A DNA stretch of 64,000 bases from Somniosus microcephalus (Eukaryota), in NCBI GenBank assembly GCA_052327205.1, contig CM126220.1:10974001-11038000 (forward strand), written 5' to 3'. A program made the position numbers and the translations under genes. The first letter of the stretch is position 1. The number at the start of each line of letters is the position of its first letter. The notes under the pieces were generated by a model, which had not been told where the DNA came from, ran no database searches, and was given only the letters and a program-made list of their open reading frames with translations. Positions 25,363-54,837 of the stretch are shown in pieces.

Positions 25363-26791
25363 CAAAAAGGGTGGTAGAGAGAAAATGGGGAATTACAGAC
25401 CGGTAAGCCTGACATCGGTAGTGGGGAAAATACTACAGTCTATTATAAAGGATGTAATAGCAGAGCACTTGGAAAAAAGTGACCGGATCGGACAAAGTCA
25501 ACATGGATTTACAAAAGGTAAATCGTGCTTGACTAATCTACTGGAATTTTTTGAGGATGTAACTGGTAAAATAGATAAGGGAGAACCAGTGGATGTGGTG
25601 TATTTGGATTTTCAAAAGGCTTTCGATAAGGTCCCGCATAAGAGATTAGCTTGTAAAATTAAGGCACATGGGATTGGGGGCAAGGTATTGACTTGGATAG
25701 AGAACTGGTTGGCAGACAGAAAGCAAAGAGTTGGAATAAACGGCTCTTTTTCCGAGTGGCAGGCAGTGACTAGTGGGATACCGCAGGGATCGGTCCTTGG
25801 ACCCCAGCTATTCACAATATATATTAATGATCTGGACGAGGGAACTAGATGTAATATCTCCAAGTTTGCAGATGACACAAAGCTGGGTGGGTGTGTGTGC
25901 TGTGAGGAGGATGCCGAGAAACTTCAGTATGATTTGGACAGGTTGGGTGAGTGGGCAGAAGCATGGCAGATGCAATATAACGTGGATAAATACGAGGTTA
26001 TCCACTTTGGTGTCAAAAACAGGAAGGCAGATTATTATCTGAATGGCAATAGATTGGGAGAAGGGGAAGTGCAATGAGACCTGGGCGTCCTTGTGCACCA
26101 GTCGCTGAAAGTAAGCATGCAGGTGCAGCAGGCGGTTAAAAAGGCAAATGGTATGTAGGCCTTCGTAGCGAGAGGGTTTGAGTACAGGAACAAGGATGTC
26201 TTGCTGCAGTTGTACAGGGCCTTGGTGAGACCACATCGGGAGTATTGTGTGCAGTTTTGGTCGCCTTATCTGAGGAAGGATGTTCTTGCCATGGAAGGAG
26301 TGCAGCGAAGATTCACCAGGCTGATACCTGGGATGGCAGGAATGACGTATGAGGAGAGATTGGGTCAATTGGGCTTGTACTCGCTGGAGTTTAGAAGAAT
26401 GAGAGGGGATCTCATCGAAACTTATAAAATTCTAACAGGATTAGACAGACTAGATGCTGGAAGGATGTTCCCGATGTTCGGGGAGTCCAGAACCAGGGGT
26501 CATAGTCTAAGGATAAGGGGTAAGCCATTTAGGACAGAAATGAGGAGGAATTTCTTCACCCAGAGAGTGGTGAACCTGTGGAATTCTCTACCACAGAAGG
26601 CAGTTGAGGCCAATTCATTAAATATATTCAAGAAGGAGTTAGATATATTTCTTAAGGCTAAATGGATCAAGGGATATGAGGAGAAGGCAGGGACAGGGTA
26701 CTGAATTTGGATGATCAGCCATGATCCCATTGAGTGGTGGAGCAGGCTCGAGGGGCTGAATGGCCTACTCCTGCTCCTATCTTCTATGTTT
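25363..26791 (+). mobile_element. CR1 LINE, 5'-truncated, 1.4 kb, RT domain with premature stops
   Basis: ORFs 25385-26077 (GNYRPVSLTS…QHGF…YLDFQKAFD…GIPQGSVLGP…SKFADDTKL) and 26201-26704 are in one frame broken by TGA at 26075 and TAG at 26156; CR1 3' UTR follows. Confidence 0.97.
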
Positions 26792-37430: not shown

Positions 37431-39201
37431 ATATGTAGGTCCCTTACAGTCAGAAATGGGAGAATTTATAATGGGGCACAAGGAAATGGCAGAGCAATTA
37501 AACAAATACTTTGGTTCTATCTTCACTGAAGAGGACACAAATAACTTCCCAGAAATGCTAGGAACCAAGGGTCGAGTGAGAAGGAGGAATTAAAGGAAAT
37601 TAGTATTAGTAAAAAAAAATAGTGCTGGAGAAATTAATGGGACTGAAAGCTGATAAATCCCCAGAACTTGATAATCTGCATCCCAGAGTACTAAAAGAGG
37701 TAGCCATTGAAATAGTGGATGCATTGGTTGTCATCTTCCAAAATCCTATAGATTATAGAACAGTTCCTGCAGATTGGAGGGTGGCGAATGTAACCCCACT
37801 ATTTAAAAAAGGAGGGATAGAGAAAACAGGGAACTACAGACTGGTTAGCCTAACATCAGTTGTAGGGAAAATGCTAGAGTCTATTATAAAAGATGTGATA
37901 ACAGGACACTTAGAAAATATCAACGGAATTAGACAAAGTCAGCATGGATTTATGAAAGGGAAATCGTGTTTGACAAACCTACTGGAGTTTTTTGAGGATG
38001 TAACTGGTAGAATAGACAAGGGAGGACCAGTGGATGTGGTGTATTTGGATTTTCAGAAGGTCTTTGATAAAGTCCCACATAAGAGGTTAGTGTGCAAAAT
38101 TAAAGCACATGGGATTGGGGTTAATATACTTGCATGGATTGAAAATTGGTTAACAGACAGAAAACAGAGTAGGAATAACTGGGTCTATTTCGGGGTGGCA
38201 GGCAGTGACTAGTGGGGTACTGCAGGGATCAGTGCTTGGGCCCTAGCTATTCACAATATATATCAATGATTTGAATGAGGAACCAAATGTAATATTTCCA
38301 AGTTTGCCGACGACACAAAACTAGGTGGGATTGAGTTGTGAGGAGGATGCAAAGAGGCTTCAAGGCGATTTAGACAAGTTGAGTGAGTGGGCAAATACAT
38401 GGCAGATGCAGCATAACATGGATAAATGTGAAGTTATCCACTTCGGTAGGAAAAACAGAAAGGCAGAGTATTATTTAAATGGTGATAGATTGGGAAATGT
38501 TGATGTACAAAGGGACCTGGGTGTCCTTGTACACCAGTCACTGAAAGCAAACATGCAGGTGCAGCAAGCAGTTAGGCAGGCAAATGGTATGTTGGCCTTC
38601 ATTGCAAGAGGATTTGAGTACAGAAGCAAGGATGTCTTACTGCAGTTATACAGGGCCTTGGTGAGACCACACCTGGAGTACTGTGTGATATACTTGCCAT
38701 AGAGGGAGTGCAGCGAAGGTTCACCAGACTGATTCCTGGGATGGCAGGACTGTCGTACGAGGAGAGATTGGGTCGACTAGGTCTGTATTCACTAGAGTTT
38801 AGAAGAATGAGAGGGGATCTCGTGGAAACGTATAAAATTCTGACAGGGCTAGACAGACTGGATGCAGGGAGGATGTTTCCCCTGGCTAGGGGGTGTAGAA
38901 CAAGGGGTCACAGTCTCAGGATACGGGGTAGGACATTTAGGACTGAGATGAGGAGAAATTTCTTCACTCGGAGGGTGATGAACCTGTGGAATTCTCTACC
39001 ACAGAAGGCTGTGGAGGCCAAGTCACTGAATATATTTAAGAAGGAGATAGATAGATTTCTAGACACAAAAGGCATCAAGGGGCATGGGGAGAGATCAGGA
39101 ATATGGTATTGAGATAGAGGATCAGCCATGATCATATTGAATGGTGGAGCAGGCTCGAAGGGCCGAATGGCCTACTTCTGCTCCTATTTTTCTATGTTTC
39201 T
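37431..39201 (+). mobile_element. CR1 LINE, 5'-truncated, 1.77 kb
   Basis: ORF2 fragments 37622-38212, 38325-38702 and 38708-39112 (DWRVANVTPLFKKG…QHGFMKGKSCLTNLLEFF…RRMRGDL…) with frameshifts, plus 3' UTR. Confidence 0.97.
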
Positions 39202-41282: not shown

Positions 41283-41955
41283 ATATAGTTAATAAGGCCA
41301 TAAAAAAGAAAACAAAGCACTGGGATTCATTTCTAGAGGGATAGAATTGAAAAGCAGAGAAGTGATAAACTTGTATAGAACCTTGGTTAGACCACACAGA
41401 GTACTGTGCACAGCTCTGGTCTCCATACTACAAAAAGGATATAGAGGCACTGGAGAGGGTGCAAAAAAGATTTACTAGGATGATACCAGAACTGAGAGGT
41501 TATACCTATCAGGAAAGATTGAACAGGTTGGGGCTTTTTTCTCTAGAAAAGAGAAGGCTGAGGGGTGACCTGATCGTGGTCTTTAAGATTATGAAGGGGT
41601 TTGATAGGGTAAACGTAGAGAAGATGTTTCCACTTGTGGGCGAGATCAGATCTAGAGGCCATAAATATAAGAGAGTCACTAATAAATCCAATCGGGAATT
41701 CAGGAGAAACTTCTTTACCCAGAGAGTGGTGAGAATGTGGAACTCGCTACCACAGGGAGTAGTTGAGGCGAATAGTATAGATACATTTAAGGGAGGCTAG
41801 ATAAACACATGAGGGAGAAAGGAATAGAAGGATACATTGATGGGGTGAGATGAAGAGGGGTGGGAGGAAGTTTGTGTGGAGCATAAACACCGGCATAGAC
41901 CAGTTGGGCCGACTGGCCTGTTTCTGTGCTGTAAATACTATGTAATATATGTAAT
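41283..41955 (+). mobile_element. CR1 LINE 3' fragment
   Basis: ORF 41459-41800 QKRFTRMIPELRG…RRNFFTQRVVRMWNSLPQ; same subfamily as the host of the 51.5-kb insertion. Confidence 0.93.
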
Positions 41956-47054: not shown

Positions 47055-47871
47055 AGGGAATTTTATCAATGGGGGCGCGTTGGAGGCGGGACTGCTGCTT
47101 GTTGGGTTTTAGTCCCGCCTCCATCGACGTCTGGCCAACCCACGCTATTTTCCCTTGATTGACCTTGTTAAGCCCGCCCTGCGGGTTTAGCAGGCCAATT
47201 AAGGGAAAGCCAGTGACCGAGAATGTCAGCGTATGACGTTTCATCTGTCAGACATTTTTGATAGATGAATTGTCATCGTTTGACAAACACTGACAATCTC
47301 TGTTGTTTGGTGAGTTCTTGTACTCAAGACTCACCAAACCTATTTCCTGAGTAGAAAGCAGATGGCTGTTGCATCGGAGAATCCAGCAGCCATTCTGTCA
47401 TCTCTGCCGTGGAGATGCCGGAGCCGCCGGATCCCCAACGATTGAAGCCTGCAGGAAGAAACAAAGGTAAGGAAACTTTTTCTAACACTTTTCACTCACC
47501 TCCCATACTTACCTCTCTACACTTGCACCCATCACTTACCTCCACAGTGCACATTTCGACCCCGCTCACCCCCCCGCAGACCCACTGCTTGCCTCGCTGA
47601 CCTTGGCGGGGTTTCCCGACGTCGGGAAGCCCGCACTTCTGTTGGAAAAATGGGGATAATCCTCTTAATTGCCTGTTAACAGGCAGTTAAGTGACTGTAA
47701 TCCCCTTCCCGCCTCGAGGAGACAGGACCCGGCACCGGTCGGGTACCCGCCTCCTGGGAAGATGGCACGGAGGCAGGTTGGGGACAGGTTCGGGACCCGC
47801 TCCCAGTTTCTGCCATTTTCCCAGCAGTCCCACCTCCCAACCTGCCTCCCCAGGGCTGTCAAAATTGCCCC
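47055..47871. mobile_element. Non-autonomous Harbinger-like DNA element
   Basis: GC/CpG-rich ends; the right terminus is …GTCAAAATTGCCCC, the left end resembles the reverse complement of 36960-37130, and there is a palindrome TTAATTGCCTGTTAACAGGCAGTTAA at 47665-47690. Confidence 0.55.
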
Positions 47872-50320: not shown

Positions 50321-51560
50321 GTCGGGCACAAACAAAATTCACCGTCAATAAACACTTTAATATCATAATTACTAAAGTTTTCAGTAGCTATGTGACCAAC
50401 AGTTAGAACTGTGGGGTTAGAACATATTAGTTGGAATATCATGGCCCTTAAATTCCTGGCCTTGGGAGGGCAGAACTGGGGCATACACAGGGTGTGGGAG
50501 GCCAGATTCCTGCCAGTTGCACCTGTCTTGTGACCAACCTAAAGTATGATGCAGGCATACTTATCGTAGAAAGGTGAAACTGGGGCCCACAATGCCATTT
50601 CCCAGGAGCACCAGGAGATTTAAGGTGTTATTTTTTTTTTTAATGTTCAGCTGCAATGTCCCAGCCCTCGACAGAGCAGAAAAAGTGTTGCAACAATACT
50701 TCTGGCCGCCCATAGGCAGGCACAGAGGGAGCACCATAAATGGCACCGATATCCACCCCCTAAACAACCCCATCCCCGGGATTTGCAACTCGTGGGTATT
50801 TTGCGAGCCCTAGCAATCTGCCTCACGAAGCACAAATAACACAGTTCTACCTGTGCTAGTATTTCCTTGCTTGTTGGTTTGTCCTGTTTGAACTTCATGG
50901 ACCTGGACTTTTGCAAAGGGCTGTTCTTAATGCTATTTGCTCATTGATGGATAAATCCTAAATCCTGAATCTGAATGCCAGGTATCAGCAGCTTCAGATG
51001 TATGCAGATTAATGAGAACATGGATTTAAACTTCACATGTTCCTGAGTTACGGTTATCAAACCATAAACCAAAAGCAGTTCATGGTTAGTCGTTCTGATG
51101 CTCATCCACCGTAGCAGTGTTTCTGTCCACTGCTTCACATTGTCTGTGTTGTGTTCCAGACTATCCATGGTCTCCCCCTTGTTTCCTGATTTTTCTTTTG
51201 AGCTGTTATACTGCTCAAGATTGCAAGAAAATTATGGGGCTAATTTAGAATTGATCTAACCCCAGCATCCAAAATACTACTTATTCACAGATTAAAAAAT
51301 AATTATAACTTTAGCCAATAGATTAATTTTTATAAACAAACAAAAAAAATGAGTACAGTAATGGGGGTTTGGCTGCTTGTTGTATTCTATTTATAACCAT
51401 CAGGAAAGACTGAACAGACTGAGGCTCTTTTCGCTTTTTTAGAAAACGGCTGAGGGGTGACCTAATAGAGTTCTTTAAAAATATGACGGTGTTTTATAGG
51501 GTAGACCTAGCAAAGACGTTTCCACGTGCGGGGGAGTCCAGAACTCGGTGCCATAAATAT

Positions 51561-51588
51561 GGCGGGAGTAACTATGACTCTCTTAAGG
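51561..51588 (+). rRNA. 28-nt fragment of 28S rRNA immediately upstream of the R2 insertion site (not a functional rRNA gene)
   Basis: GGCGGGAGTAACTATGACTCTCTTAAGG is the conserved eukaryotic LSU sequence that normally continues TAGCCAAATGCC. Confidence 0.95.
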
Positions 51589-51874
51589 TGGCCTGGGCTG
51601 GTGAGCTCTCGCAGTTCTACTTTGCGGGTGACTCCCGCGTGGCTTTGGTGAGAGCCCGCTCGGTATTTTGCTGGATTGAGTACTCCCTCATGCTTCCTTG
51701 AGTTGGTCTATCTGTGACTTCTTTAGGCGTTGCAGGGTAATTTCCCTCCCCCCGCGACTCCTGAGAAGTATCCAAGGTTACTAGTAACAGCGAGAATCTG
51801 GGGCTCTATATCGCTGCGAGTTGTACCTCCTAGTGGTCCCGCTGGGCAACACTTAGGTGTTGGCTGAAGCAACT
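51561..51874 (+). ncRNA. HDV-like self-cleaving ribozyme (R2 5' ribozyme), unit 1, apparently intact
   Basis: P1 GGCGGG(51561-66)/CCCGCT(51838-43) with G1.U wobble; P2 AGTTGT(51819-24)/GCAACT(51869-74); P3 ACC/GGT; L3 TCCTAGT; P1.1 CC/GG(51844-45); P4 CAACAC-TTAG-GTGTTG; J4/2 G-C51864-TGAA. Confidence 0.92.
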
Positions 51875-51895
51875 GGCCGAGAACCTCACTTTTTA

Positions 51896-52102
51896 GGTGG
51901 GAAGCAACCAAACCTCTCAACCTCTTCGGAAGTAGAGTGCCGGACCTTCGAGGACCTTTGAGGATCTCAGACCGGTTAGTCCACCGAATGTTGAGAGCCG
52001 CGGTTCGCAACCGTAGCTGCGGTAATCTTGCAGAGCTCTACGCCGCAGTGAGTCGTACCTCTGGGGTCCCACCGGCGGCCTGTGAGGGCAGTTAAACCGA
52101 CT
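51896..52102 (+). ncRNA. HDV-like fold, unit 2 (probably catalytically dead)
   Basis: P1 GGTGGG(51896-901)/CCCACC(52068-73); P2 AGTCG/CGACT; P3 ACC/GGT; GG; P4 GCCT-GTGA-GGGC. L3 is shortened (TCTGG) and T52092 sits at the catalytic-C position. Confidence 0.7.
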
Positions 52103-52123
52103 GGCCGAGAACTCTGCTAAATA

Positions 52124-52255
52124 GGCTGGATTGCAACTGAACTCCGTGCAACTTTGTTGCACTGATGTTGTAATAGCCACGGTGCCTTTGAGTGGTGGGC
52201 CGTGTGCGGGTCGTACCATTCGTGGTCCAGTCGGCGCTTTAAGCCTAACCAACTC
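52124..52255 (+). ncRNA. HDV-like fold, unit 3 (variant)
   Basis: P1 GGCTGG(52124-29)/CCAGTC(52227-32); P3 ACC/GGT; L3 ATTCGT; GG; P4 GCT-TTA-AGC; J4/2 C52245-TAA; imperfect P2 GGGTCG/CAACTC. Confidence 0.65.
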
Positions 52256-52838
52256 AAAAATAACTCAAATATTGGTTGGCGGCAACCATTTCCCCCCCGT
52301 AGGAGGGGTCAAGGAAAAAATTCATTTGACTCGTTGGAGTCAACTGTGAAGAGGCTTCAGTCAATTGCCTCAAGATTCAGTTTGGTCCTACCCGGCTGAA
52401 AGTTCCGCCACTTACAGCTTAATAGGCGTGAATAATGTCACATACCCTGGTACCAACCTAGGACTATCGAATCGGTGTCAAAGGCCAGTCAACGCCGTCT
52501 ACGCCTGGCACAGCGACCCCGGGACGCTCGTTCCAAAGTTGATGATATCGATTAGGGCAGAGGATTGACACCGCTTACTTTGTTAAAGTGTCTGTCAAAT
52601 CCAATGACTGCCCGAGAATCAACTGCCGGAGCCCCACGGGATGGGTATGGCAACCAAATTTACACATCAGATGATGAGGGATGACCATCATACTGAACGG
52701 TACTGGCTCAGTTCACTTACCTTGGTGGAGGCTTTCACGGTTGGTAGACTTGTATGGCCGTCGCAAGATCAGCCCAGTCCTTATAAGATCCTGGTTTTGC
52801 CGGCCACTTTGGTTGTGGTTAGCTGATGGACTTTTGCT

Positions 52839-52913
52839 ACGTGGACGAGCCACGTTAAGACTCAAAACGGACACTCACTTAATGGGGCTTCGGCCCCACG
52901 AGTGTGACAAAAA
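52839..52913 (+). other. R2-type 3' RNA module (pseudoknot + terminal stem-loop + short A tail)
   Basis: ACGTGG-ACGAG-CCACGT hairpin whose loop GAG can pair with CTC (52861-63); AAAA linker; ACACTC/GAGTGT stem enclosing TGGGGC-TTCG-GCCCCA; AAAAA. Confidence 0.75.
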
Positions 52914-54179
52914 TAGTCACTAATAAATCCAATAAATAATTCAGAAGAAACTTCTTTACCCAGAGAGTGGTGAGAATGTGGAACTTGCTACTACAGGTAG
53001 TGGTTGAGGTGAATAGCATAGATGCATTTAAAAGGAAGCTAGATAACTACATGAGGGAGAAAGGAATAGAAGGATATGCAGATAGGATTTGATGAAGAGG
53101 GGTGGGAAGAGGCTCGTGTGGAGCAGAAACACCGGCATAAAGACCTGTTGGACTGAATGGCCTGTTTCTGTGCTGTACATTCTATGTAATTAGCCGGACT
53201 TGGATCAAAAATATGTATGTGTAATGTATTTCAATACTCCACCAAACCATTGATTTCAATTGCCATTGTCAGAGATTTTTTACCCATTACCCTGAAGATC
53301 CACAGGGAGGGATGTATAGGGGAGAAAAGTACCTAAGAGCTCAGAGACAAATAGAAAACTAAGTGATGGGCTGGCGGGAGTGATAACAATTTACTATATT
53401 TTTTCTTGCTCAACACTGATGAAAGTCAGACAAATGGAATACATCGGGTAACAGAAATAAGTTTTATTCTGCTCCCTCCCCAAGAAAAACCCTTTAAAAC
53501 TACAGTTTTTGGGTGATGTGATACTATATACTTTCAGTTTTTACATTTAGATATCCAGGATTAGAATAAAACTATCCATCAATGCTTGCACCCCTCCCAA
53601 CATCAAAACCTATTCTATTACCCTTGCACCTACTTTACTGACTTCTTTGATACTCAGTACACCTGTCCTATAACTATAGAAAAAGTAGGATGTTTACATT
53701 ATAAAAGGAAAGATTGCCTATGTGTGTGCAATAAACGTGTTGGAATTCAATTTCAAGATCCTGATGGCATTCATAAACCAAGAAGTCATCATTAAAACTC
53801 CATGTCTTGATTTATAGCTCACTGGCAAAGGCATCTATTCTATAACTACAATTCAGGCAGCTGTAATTTCAGAACTAGAGGAAGGGAAGTGAATTGACAG
53901 TTGCACAGACAGCGGTGCACAGTCCCTTTAAGAGAAAGAAGCAGTCTGTGTAATCCATCTTTCTTGAATAGATCGGTTCAGTCTGCTCGCTGGCATTACA
54001 CCCTAAGCCACCTTAGGAGGTTGAAAGCGGCAGTTGTCCAGAGCGGCTCCAAAGCTGATTTGGAGGCTTAACAGTAACAAGATTGAGATTACAATGTGCA
54101 GAGGGTATTGCTCTTCGTTCATCATGGGAATTATGGATATCAAGACCTGAGAAAATCATCTTAGCACACAGTTTGCATG

Positions 54180-54237: not shown

Positions 54238-54268
<31 letters not shown>

Positions 54269-54837
54269 CCCGGACAAATGAGCAAAGCAGCTGGGCAGCG
54301 CTGAGAGCCGCTCCGGAGCCCAGCCGCACCGCGCCCGTCTCACACACAAAACACACACACACACAACGGCAGGATTCACTTCATCGGCATTTATATATTT
54401 TGGAAACAAAACCAAAGGAGTAGCGGAGAGGGAGCCCCGAGCTGCTGGCTGACTGTGTGCACCGGGCTTTGCCAAGGTCTCGGAGGAAGCGGCAGCGACG
54501 GGCTCGCTTTCTGGACTGGGCGCCGGTGCTTGGTGCGGTCGGCGGGCAAGTCAGGTTGGTTTCTCTTCGCTCTGGCCGTTTCCGATTTCGTCTGTCTTCC
54601 TCCTCCTCCCCACCCCCCTCTCTCTAGAAAGAAAAAACTGGTATTTTCTTTTTAAAAGCCCGAGAATCCGGCCATATTTTTTTTTTACCAAGACTCATGT
54701 TTTTATGTTACCGCGAAGGGAATAAACGTGCCGGATAATTGTGGATTCCTAGATGGTTCGGGATTACTGCGCTTTTGCTTCTTGGATTGTGAGATTCAGT
54801 GGTTGGTTGTATCTAGGGAAATAACTCCCCGGTGTTG
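54180..54837 (+). promoter_or_regulatory. CpG island; candidate promoter and non-coding first exon
   Basis: Non-repetitive, CpG-dense, GC-rich segment ending at a donor-like TTG|GTAAGA (54838); its ATGs open only short ORFs. Gene not identified. Confidence 0.6.
54238..54365. repeat. (TG)13 and interrupted (CA)n microsatellites in inverted arrangement
   Basis: (TG)n at 54238-54263 and (CA)n at 54341-54365. Confidence 0.85.

Follow-up and report, generated by a model that had tools for sequence, protein, structure and literature searches.

Within the 64-kb stretch of DNA analysed here (contig CM126220.1, positions 10,974,001 to 11,038,000; below, the window) a CR1-like repeat is interrupted at positions 51561-52913 of the plus strand by a 1.35-kb (1353-bp) block derived from R2, a retrotransposon of the 28S ribosomal RNA (rRNA) gene. 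It is near-certain that this insert is a retro-copy of a ribozyme-processed, R2-derived RNA devoid of an open reading frame (ORF), and that the source of this RNA lay in a 28S gene. We favour, with a probability of roughly 0.55, the interpretation that the insert is a non-autonomous R2 derivative comparable to the short internally deleted elements (SIDEs) of R2, which was moved by R2 protein acting in trans and landed at a pseudo-site resembling the 28S target. A more tentative extension of this interpretation, to which we give clearly less credence, would place the insert in a living family of non-autonomous R2 parasites, the first in a vertebrate, in a genome like that of a cartilaginous fish. 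Its RNA would carry two or more ribozyme units in tandem, of which compensatory changes keep the inner ones foldable; it would be mobilised in trans by the R2 protein of the host and would occasionally land at pseudo-sites in the germ line.

Extent, composition and coding capacity of the insert

The insert differs from its surroundings in composition. Its GC content is 0.523, varying between 0.48 and 0.56 along the profile compared with 0.35-0.44 in the surrounding DNA. The 71 CpG dinucleotides correspond to an observed/expected (o/e) ratio of 0.77, whereas the ratio is 0.31 and 0.50 in the two flanks and 0.37 in the whole window. An earlier note, made from the letters alone, had marked a CpG-rich block at 51561-52913, and both its limits and its content proved to be as described. 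The high ratio relative to the flanks suggests that this is a young copy from a source in which CpG is preserved. A blastn search of the window with the insert did not reveal a second copy.

The insert has little room for a protein. On the plus strand the longest stop-free frame comprises 81 amino acids; on the two strands together there are 17 ORFs of at least 40 amino acids, the longest having 111. Pfam searches with seven ORFs of the insert returned two matches alone, with E-values of 0.09-0.13, far from the cut-offs. The 72-residue frame at 52608-52823, the one candidate for a remnant of the C-terminal part of the R2 ORF, was compared by phmmer with 1.84 billion representative sequences. 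No R2 protein was found; the sole match (E = 3.9e-07) aligned in eight stretches and was a translated tandem repeat. The matching entry (P0001) is a 450-residue 'protein' consisting of eight near-identical 56-residue repeats, and is most likely a translated satellite.

The absence of an ORF for reverse transcriptase (RT) and restriction-like endonuclease (RLE), claimed in the earlier note, agrees with the short plus-strand frames and with the Pfam and phmmer searches. The single ORF of an autonomous R2, with zinc finger/Myb, RT and RLE domains, is not present, and in having no RT/endonuclease ORF the insert resembles the R2 SIDEs. It does not have the RNA polymerase III head, derived from tRNA, 5S or 7SL RNA, of a short interspersed nuclear element (SINE) either: Rfam gave no match at the gathering thresholds in the whole 64-kb window, and the three matches obtained at E ≤ 10 in 51400-53100 were unrelated (all with E > 3), none of them being of SINE-head or hepatitis delta virus (HDV) type.

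The 28S leader

The insert starts with a leader (51561-51588, plus strand) derived from 28S rRNA. Its sequence, GGCGGGAGTAACTATGACTCTCTTAAGG, is that of the 28 nt directly upstream of the R2 nick site, and it is identical at 28 of 28 positions with the corresponding segment of an 84-nt 28S target oligonucleotide, which reads ...GGGTAAAC-GGCGGGAGTAACTATGACTCTCTTAAGG-TAGCCAAATGCC... (PMC12180492). The identity stops at position -28: base 51560 is T, where 28S has C. The 28-nt 28S start described earlier thus has the printed 28S letters up to -28 and no further.

Many R2 ribozymes cut inside the 28S sequence, in which case the 5′ strand of the P1 helix is 28S sequence. The commonest R2 self-cleavage site is -28, found in earwig, silkmoths, flour beetle A, planaria and zebra finch (PMC3774820). 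The first base of the leader, 51561, would coincide with this predicted cleavage site. As the 5′ end of the insert is exactly the -28 self-cleavage site, the source copy must have occupied the R2 site in a 28S gene and have been transcribed together with that gene; it is the leader from which this 28S residence is inferred.

The HDV-like ribozyme

We searched for the ribozyme with a strict HDV descriptor. The descriptor required a P1 of 6-7 bp, in which only the first pair may be G-U (G-U or G-C), a P3 of three Watson-Crick pairs, an L3 loop of 6-8 nt containing CC, GG after P1, a 6-bp P2 containing no more than one G-U pair, and a C located 3-5 nt before the 3′ strand of P2. It superseded a loose version, which had been uninformative (51 matches in 1.7 kb). 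In the 64-kb window, both strands included, the strict descriptor matched exactly one locus, here called unit 1. Dinucleotide shuffling of the insert produced a match in just 2 of 300 cases. The complete HDV-like ribozyme reported in the earlier note was thereby recovered as the only strict match, with all pairs present.

Unit 1 can form the nested double pseudoknot of the HDV ribozymes, with P1, P2, P3, P1.1 and the optional P4 in the HDV order, all on the plus strand. The 5′ strand of P1, GGCGGG (51561-51566), is 28S sequence from -28 to -23. It pairs with CCCGCT (51838-51843), 277 nt downstream, through one G-U and five Watson-Crick pairs. The first base of P1 is also that of the insert, a coincidence that is independent of the descriptor. 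The J1/2 loop (51567-51818) consists of 252 nt, 22 nt of 28S and 230 nt of the element, and falls inside the range of 216-498 nt given for silkmoth R2 ribozymes (PMC3774820, text in part).

The catalytic core, as defined by the pair table of the descriptor match, extends from 51819 to 51874. It comprises P2 (AGTTGT, 51819-51824, with GCAACT, 51869-51874), P3 (ACC, 51825-51827, with GGT, 51835-51837), the L3 loop TCCTAGT (51828-51834), P1.1 (CC, 51829-51830, with GG, 51844-51845) and the P4 hairpin AACAC-TTAG-GTGTT (51848-51861). In J4/2 (GGC-TGAA, 51862-51868) C51864 stands where the catalytic C would be expected and is the candidate for it. The P3/L3 segment CCTCCTAGTGG (51826-51836) is identical at 10 of 11 positions with CCUCCUCGUGG, which a passage of Kojima et al. 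(2016; PMC5035012) gives as the most conserved ribozyme sequence in R2Dm and in the zebra finch R2 (R2-1_TG). As RNA, J4/2 of unit 1 (GGCUGAA) contains the triplet UGA.

A plain minimum free energy (MFE) fold of unit 1 was uninformative (z = -1.31), the HDV pseudoknot not being representable in such a fold. Scanning metagenomes with a degenerate core pattern gave at least 117 loci, which we regard as chance matches: a 28S-like leader (at most four mismatches) was present within 700 nt upstream in none of the 117 listed.

An internal duplicate of the ribozyme unit

A second, diverged ribozyme unit (unit 2) lies at 51896-52112 on the plus strand. Its core (52035-52112), 232 nt downstream of the core of unit 1, is a diverged copy of the latter with 54 identical positions in 82 alignment columns. 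The local alignment of the two cores scored 167, a value reached by none of 300 shuffles (89.6 ± 10.1). P1 of unit 2 (GGTGGG, 51896-51901, with CCCACC, 52068-52073) is fully Watson-Crick; a P1 partner arose by chance in 34 of 2000 shuffles. P2 has five pairs (AGTCG/CGACT), and P3 (ACC/GGT) is the same as in unit 1.

The two units differ by two double, compensatory changes: pair 3 of P1 is C-G in unit 1 and T-A in unit 2, and pair 4 of P2 is T-A in unit 1 and C-G in unit 2. L3 of unit 2 is shortened to TCTGG. Because this loop has a single C, P1.1 is weakened and the activity of unit 2 is doubtful. A covariance model (R1) built from units 1 and 2 found these two alone (E = 5.6e-25 and 3.1e-22), with scores that are high by construction, the units being the model's own input. 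The next match in the window (E = 1.7) was in an unrelated promoter-like region. Judging from the alignment of the two cores, the ribozyme unit was duplicated in tandem at least once in the body of the insert, and long ago.

A repeat search revealed a 13-nt motif, GACTG[G/C]CCGAGAA, in three copies (51871-51883, 52099-52111 and 52606-52618), which comes straight after the 3′ strand of P2 in units 1 and 2. The third copy of the motif was the only hint of a fourth unit, and this candidate was dropped. A candidate third unit on the plus strand (52124-52254, GTCGTACC...GTGGTCCAGTCGG) does have P3, the GG and a P1 partner. It was rejected as well: 24 of 300 shuffles reached its alignment score with core 2, a P1 partner was found by chance in 386 of 2000 shuffles, and the R1 model missed it at E ≤ 10. 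Nor did we retain the idea that the heads of the internal units (51896, 52124 and 52274) are decayed 28S 28-mers. The best local alignment with the 28-mer was reached by 34 of 200 shuffles and the second best by 82 of 200; for head 2 against the downstream sequence the count was 133 of 300.

The 3′ terminal module

The insert ends with a module (52839-52913, plus strand) composed of two hairpins, an A-rich linker and a tail. Hairpin 1, ACGTGG-ACGAG-CCACGT (52839-52855), is followed by the A-rich linker and by hairpin 2, ACACTC...TGGGGC-TTCG-GCCCCA...GAGTGT (52871-52905). The single-stranded tail GACAAAAA (52906-52913) ends in five A residues, which occupy 52909-52913 in accordance with the A5 end noted earlier. 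For the last 78 nt the MFE and centroid structures were the same (-25.4 kcal/mol, z = -2.93), and none of 200 shuffles was equal. An MFE fold of the last 274 nt was uninformative (z = -1.85).

The functional 3′ module of the R2 element R2Tg is the terminal 67 nt, and the 3′ untranslated regions (UTRs) of R2Tg and R2Bm are described as two helices, a linker and an A-rich tail (PMC12222951, text in part). The R2Tg junction is printed there as ...GTTCGATAAA-TAGCC, that is, ...GATAAA before TAGCC. A short A run before TAG is common to the 3′ end of the insert and the end of R2Tg. What had been called an R2-type 3′ module has this architecture; the label would hold by analogy with the layout of R2Tg and R2Bm, with which it was compared at the level of architecture only.

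The host repeat and the insertion site

Both flanks of the insert belong to the same repeat. The left part (51336-51560, plus strand) is similar to the 3′ region of CR1 elements, has very high depth in the contigs described below, and shows 77.5% identity to the paralogue at 41510-41668 and 72.5% to that at 44265-44109. The right part (52914-53191, plus strand) starts with TAGTCA, where the 28S target has TAGCCA; it is 86% and 80% identical to the paralogues, and copies of the family end at 53189-53191. The two paralogues in the window are uninterrupted (41510-41946, plus strand, and 44265-43844, minus strand) and lie in inverted orientation about 2.2 kb apart. The flanks 51401-51560 and 52914-53200 align with them at 72-86% identity.

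Across the break the paralogues read CCATAAATAT-AAGA-GAGTCAC and the window reads CCATAAATAT-[insert]-TAGTCAC. The consensus of the host-repeat family, taken from loose ends of contigs, is CCATAAATATAAG-A-TAGTCACC. The interruption is clean apart from four absent host bp (AAGA), and there is no target-site duplication. The earlier description as a precise interruption of a CR1 copy can be kept for the clean interruption, with the 4-bp loss added. The host repeat is putatively CR1, to judge by its 3′ end of the ATTCTRTG or ATTCTATG type; a CR1 paper was searched for the motif and did not contain it.

Remnants of RT ORFs of long interspersed nuclear elements (LINEs; Pfam RVT_1) were found on the plus strand at 25385-26077 (E = 1.7e-32) and 37622-38212 (E = 2.2e-15). 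The segments 26543-26645 and 38951-39004, a few hundred bases past the remnants, resemble the tail of the host repeat. Since this likeness recurs downstream of both remnants, the host repeat may be the 3′ end of that LINE family.

If the five A residues are the end of the element and the host AAGA was lost, the pre-insertion site was TAAGA/TAGTCA. Between positions -5 and +6 this matches the 28S target, TAAGG/TAGCCA, at 9 of 11 positions. By a binomial calculation made by hand, the chance of at least 9 matches in 11 is about 1e-4, and about double if both parses of the junction (see below) are allowed. In the AAGA-loss parse four of the five downstream nt match 28S, position -20 (51545) is T, and positions -9 to -1 read AATATAAGA. 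The off-target sites of engineered R2Tg match the downstream homology over 4-5 nt, keep T at position -20 and are rich in T/A immediately upstream (PMC12222951, text in part).

Related sequences in public sequencing runs

Four public runs (X1-X4) hold parts of the element, all of them as contigs and none on record as RNA. The contigs were aligned with 51000-53500 at a likeness cut-off of 85%. At 51907-52066 run X2 holds two distinct 161-nt contigs, which have 9 and 17 differences in 160 nt and depths of 58 and 92; the single contig of X1 differs at 17 positions and that of X3 at 9. Two longer contigs, of 370 nt (X2, depth 136) and 377 nt (X3), are collinear with 52044/37-52445, each with 21 differences and 32 gap letters. 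Partial contigs cover 52088/52102-52295, 52513-52657 and 52656-52821, and then continue with 54-114 unlike letters. A 178-nt contig of X4, which comes from a different study, covers 51537-51714 with no differences and bridges the junction between leader and body.

In all, the contigs of the four runs contain several variants that are about 89-94% identical to the interior of the insert. Judging by these contigs, several related sequences exist, and the element is a member of a family with several diverged members. The possibility raised in the earlier note that this is a single copy is answered accordingly: there is more than one. As for a deleted structure shared among copies, the contigs show several variants of the interior, and no listed contig crosses 52657 in the arrangement of the window. 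None of the listed contigs crosses the 3′ junction or spans the whole insert.

Summed depth over the unique flanks is about 16-20 in X1, 27-35 in X2 and 3-5 in X3, and in the bins of the insert 31-475, 64-920 and 0.9-263, respectively. It peaks over 51756-51923 and 52680-52847 in three runs, which would fit ends shared with an autonomous R2, but contig depth cannot rank parts of the element or give a copy number. Contigs of X1 (organism A) and of X2 and X3 (organism B) match the unique flanks 51000-51420 and 53165-53500 with no other letters, the right-flank contig of X1 having one gap; the labels A and B may stand for one species or for very close relatives.

Origin of the insert

We propose the following route. 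RNA polymerase I would transcribe the element as part of the 28S co-transcript, and the ribozyme would free an RNA with 28 nt of 28S still on its 5′ end. R2 protein supplied by an autonomous R2 would bind the 3′ module and nick the DNA. The nicked bottom strand would then prime reverse transcription, aided by base pairing between the primer and a few 28S bases of read-through. In the present case the nick would have fallen on the pseudo-site in the CR1-like repeat, at TAAGA/TAGTCA instead of TAAGG/TAGCCA. Because the 28S leader found no upstream homology at this site, joining of the 5′ end would have bypassed the usual annealing, at the cost of 4 bp and leaving no duplication. The earlier note had called the insert a full-length retro-copy of a non-autonomous R2 parasite. 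The R2-derived retro-copy, the end at -28, the missing ORF and the several relatives are all supported; the life as a parasite carries the lower confidence stated at the outset.

Several observations weigh against this route. By a hand count, the site matches 28S at only 6 of the 23 positions from -6 to -28. The AAAA at 52910-52913 may be the host AAGA with one change; in that parse the junction shifts by 4 bp, the pseudo-site match and the T at -20 vanish, and another LINE becomes possible. The HDV-type families of Rfam did not match unit 1. As the 252-nt J1/2 exceeds what these compact models allow, this says little, and it still is a negative. Self-cleavage of unit 1 is a prediction. The relatives cease to match at 52295, 52656/7 and 52821; they may be longer and carry an ORF, and the ORF-less form may be unique. 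Local divergence at the likeness cut-off would explain these breaks equally well. The X4 contig (record 25) is the sole contig over the junction between host and leader, with 24 host letters, under the 31-letter rule. The evidence consists of this copy and the contig relatives, and includes neither a 28S-resident copy nor an autonomous R2 partner.

The best-placed alternative is a one-off event, which we consider rather unlikely. The RNA or cDNA of an autonomous R2 would have lost its ORF through a single internal deletion or a template switch, or the DNA would have been deleted later; the insert would then be a dead-on-arrival R2 copy, and the contig relatives would be the UTRs of ordinary R2 copies. 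Relatives with 89-91% identity indeed match 52513-52657 and 52656-52821 on separate contigs and pass into 54-109 unlike letters at 52656/7. An ATG at 52641 stands just before this break, as expected if the relatives carry an ORF there. The breaks, on the other hand, may be plain local divergence at the 85% cut-off, and one or more of the variants run collinear for 400 nt, with a depth about 5x that of unique sequence. No C-terminal remnant of an ORF is detectable: apart from the repeat artefact, the frame 52608-52823 had no homologue among the 1.84 billion representatives. For R2 a long 5′ UTR may be normal. In R2Tg, leaving out the 5′ UTR and shortening the 3′ UTR from 325 to 100 nt saves more than 1 kb (PMC12222951, text in part), from which we infer a long 5′ UTR. 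The UGA in J4/2 of unit 1 might also speak for this alternative, if the pattern of Drosophila has any meaning in a vertebrate: there, 18 of the 19 autonomous R2 elements have a stop codon in J4/2, and none of the five SIDEs does (Eickbush & Eickbush 2012, PMC3414825, text in part).

Reverse transcription of the R2-derived, ribozyme-processed RNA by another LINE of the CR1, L2 or L1 type, in the manner of a processed pseudogene, is improbable. Such an origin would account for the short A run at the end of the copy, and the window does hold LINE RT remnants (the two RVT_1 matches). If the final AAAA is the host AAGA, the primer TCTT would anneal to an A-rich tail with no bases lost or gained. 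CR1-type LINEs, however, probably recognise their own 3′ ends. Moreover, there is no target-site duplication, the A5 is very short, and the junction is in register on a TAAG-TAG-CA core like that of the 28S target.

That the insert is an assembly chimera or a piece of ribosomal DNA (rDNA) transposed at the DNA level is very improbable: rDNA and R2 are often misassembled (PMC13188248, text in part) and no listed contig spans the whole insert, but the 28S portion has precisely the 28 nt that a ribozyme-processed RNA should carry, past the insert the host repeat continues in register, and the X4 contig, which stems from a different study, shows no difference over 51537-51714.

Comparison with known R2 derivatives

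The closest known counterparts of the proposed trans-mobilised derivative are the R2 SIDEs of Drosophila. R2Dwi_SIDE is 529 bp long and resides in 28S; its ribozyme is 64% and its 3′ end 81% identical to those of R2Dwi, and between them it has an unrelated middle part, with a poly(A) tail at the end (PMC3414825, text in part). The insert shares with this element a central part without recognisable origin and the dependence on 28S co-transcription, the latter seen here in the 28S leader. It differs in several respects. The insert is 1.3 kb long, and its cleavage is predicted at -28 within 28S instead of at the junction. Its J1/2 spans 252 nt, its ribozyme unit is duplicated, and its terminal A run is A5, against 14-38 A in the SIDE. 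SIDE copies occupy the 28S R2 site, whereas this copy is outside rDNA, in a CR1-like repeat, and its host is apparently a vertebrate. Judged from the sequence, the duplicated ribozyme unit and the landing outside rDNA are variant features of the insert.

With the R2 ribozymes that cut at -28 (Eickbush, Burke & Eickbush 2013, PMC3774820, text in part) unit 1 has in common a P1 formed from 28S positions -28 to -23, the conserved P3/L3/P1.1 core, a long J1/2 and 28S bases kept at the RNA's 5′ end. In contrast to these, the leader of the insert is on a copy outside rDNA, where it is unable to anneal to the target, and cleavage is predicted.

The landing is comparable to the off-target insertions of engineered R2Tg in human cells (PMC12222951, text in part): the site is not in rDNA, TAGTC resembles TAGCC, and there is a T at -20 with T/A-rich sequence upstream. 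Unlike these, the insert is natural and heritable and arose without overexpression, and the likeness hinges on treating the four bases as a target deletion. R2NS of planaria and liver fluke is likewise R2-derived sequence outside 28S (PMC5035012, text in part). The R2NS elements are autonomous, have no 28S leader and belong to lineages without target specificity, whereas the leader of the insert suggests that its source was still in 28S. TbRIME and NARTc, the non-autonomous partners of ingi and L1Tc, are internally deleted non-LTR (long terminal repeat) derivatives that keep a 5′ HDV-like ribozyme, as the insert does. They belong to another LINE clade, are dispersed, and do not depend on rRNA co-transcription (PMC3414825 and PMC5814959, texts in part).

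R2 has been reported from the angel shark (a figure legend in PMC5035012) and, in a recent catalogue, more broadly from Chondrichthyes (PMC13188248, text in part). The term 'non-autonomous' is absent from the main texts of these two papers; elements of relevance, among them shark R2 sequences and UTRs, may be listed in their supplements. In the literature searched, none of the papers that use the phrase 'short internally deleted' is on vertebrate R2, as judged by titles and the beginnings of abstracts, Repbase and Dfam being outside the scope of this search. Drosophila is the only source of R2 SIDEs that the searched main texts document, which agrees with the earlier note, to which no such element was known from chondrichthyans. 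The insert is likely a vertebrate example of an R2 parasite.

Among site-specific non-LTR retrotransposons R2 serves as the model, and it is now being engineered for gene insertion. An ORF-less R2 derivative of a vertebrate would show which parts of the RNA a vertebrate R2 protein needs in nature, and that in vivo the RNA is accompanied by the 28 nt of 28S leader. It would also show a germ-line off-target insertion of R2, with the junction on TAG, a small loss of target and no duplication. If the living family is real, its landings would document the off-target specificity of R2 in nature, and its RNA would be a natural minimal template for R2-based gene insertion. The duplicated unit raises the question whether internal ribozymes trim the RNA or act as stabilising or protein-binding folds.

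Other features of the window

The chance match of the R1 covariance model (E = 1.7) drew attention to a CpG-rich, promoter-like stretch at 47060-47470. It contains GGGGCGCG, two inverted GGCGGGAC/GTCCCGCC boxes, and CCAAT and TGACGT motifs. A possible first exon follows, with an ATG at 47363 and a GTAAGG donor near 47468. About 1.4 kb downstream of the insert there is a short GC-rich island (54250-54550, GC 0.55-0.61).

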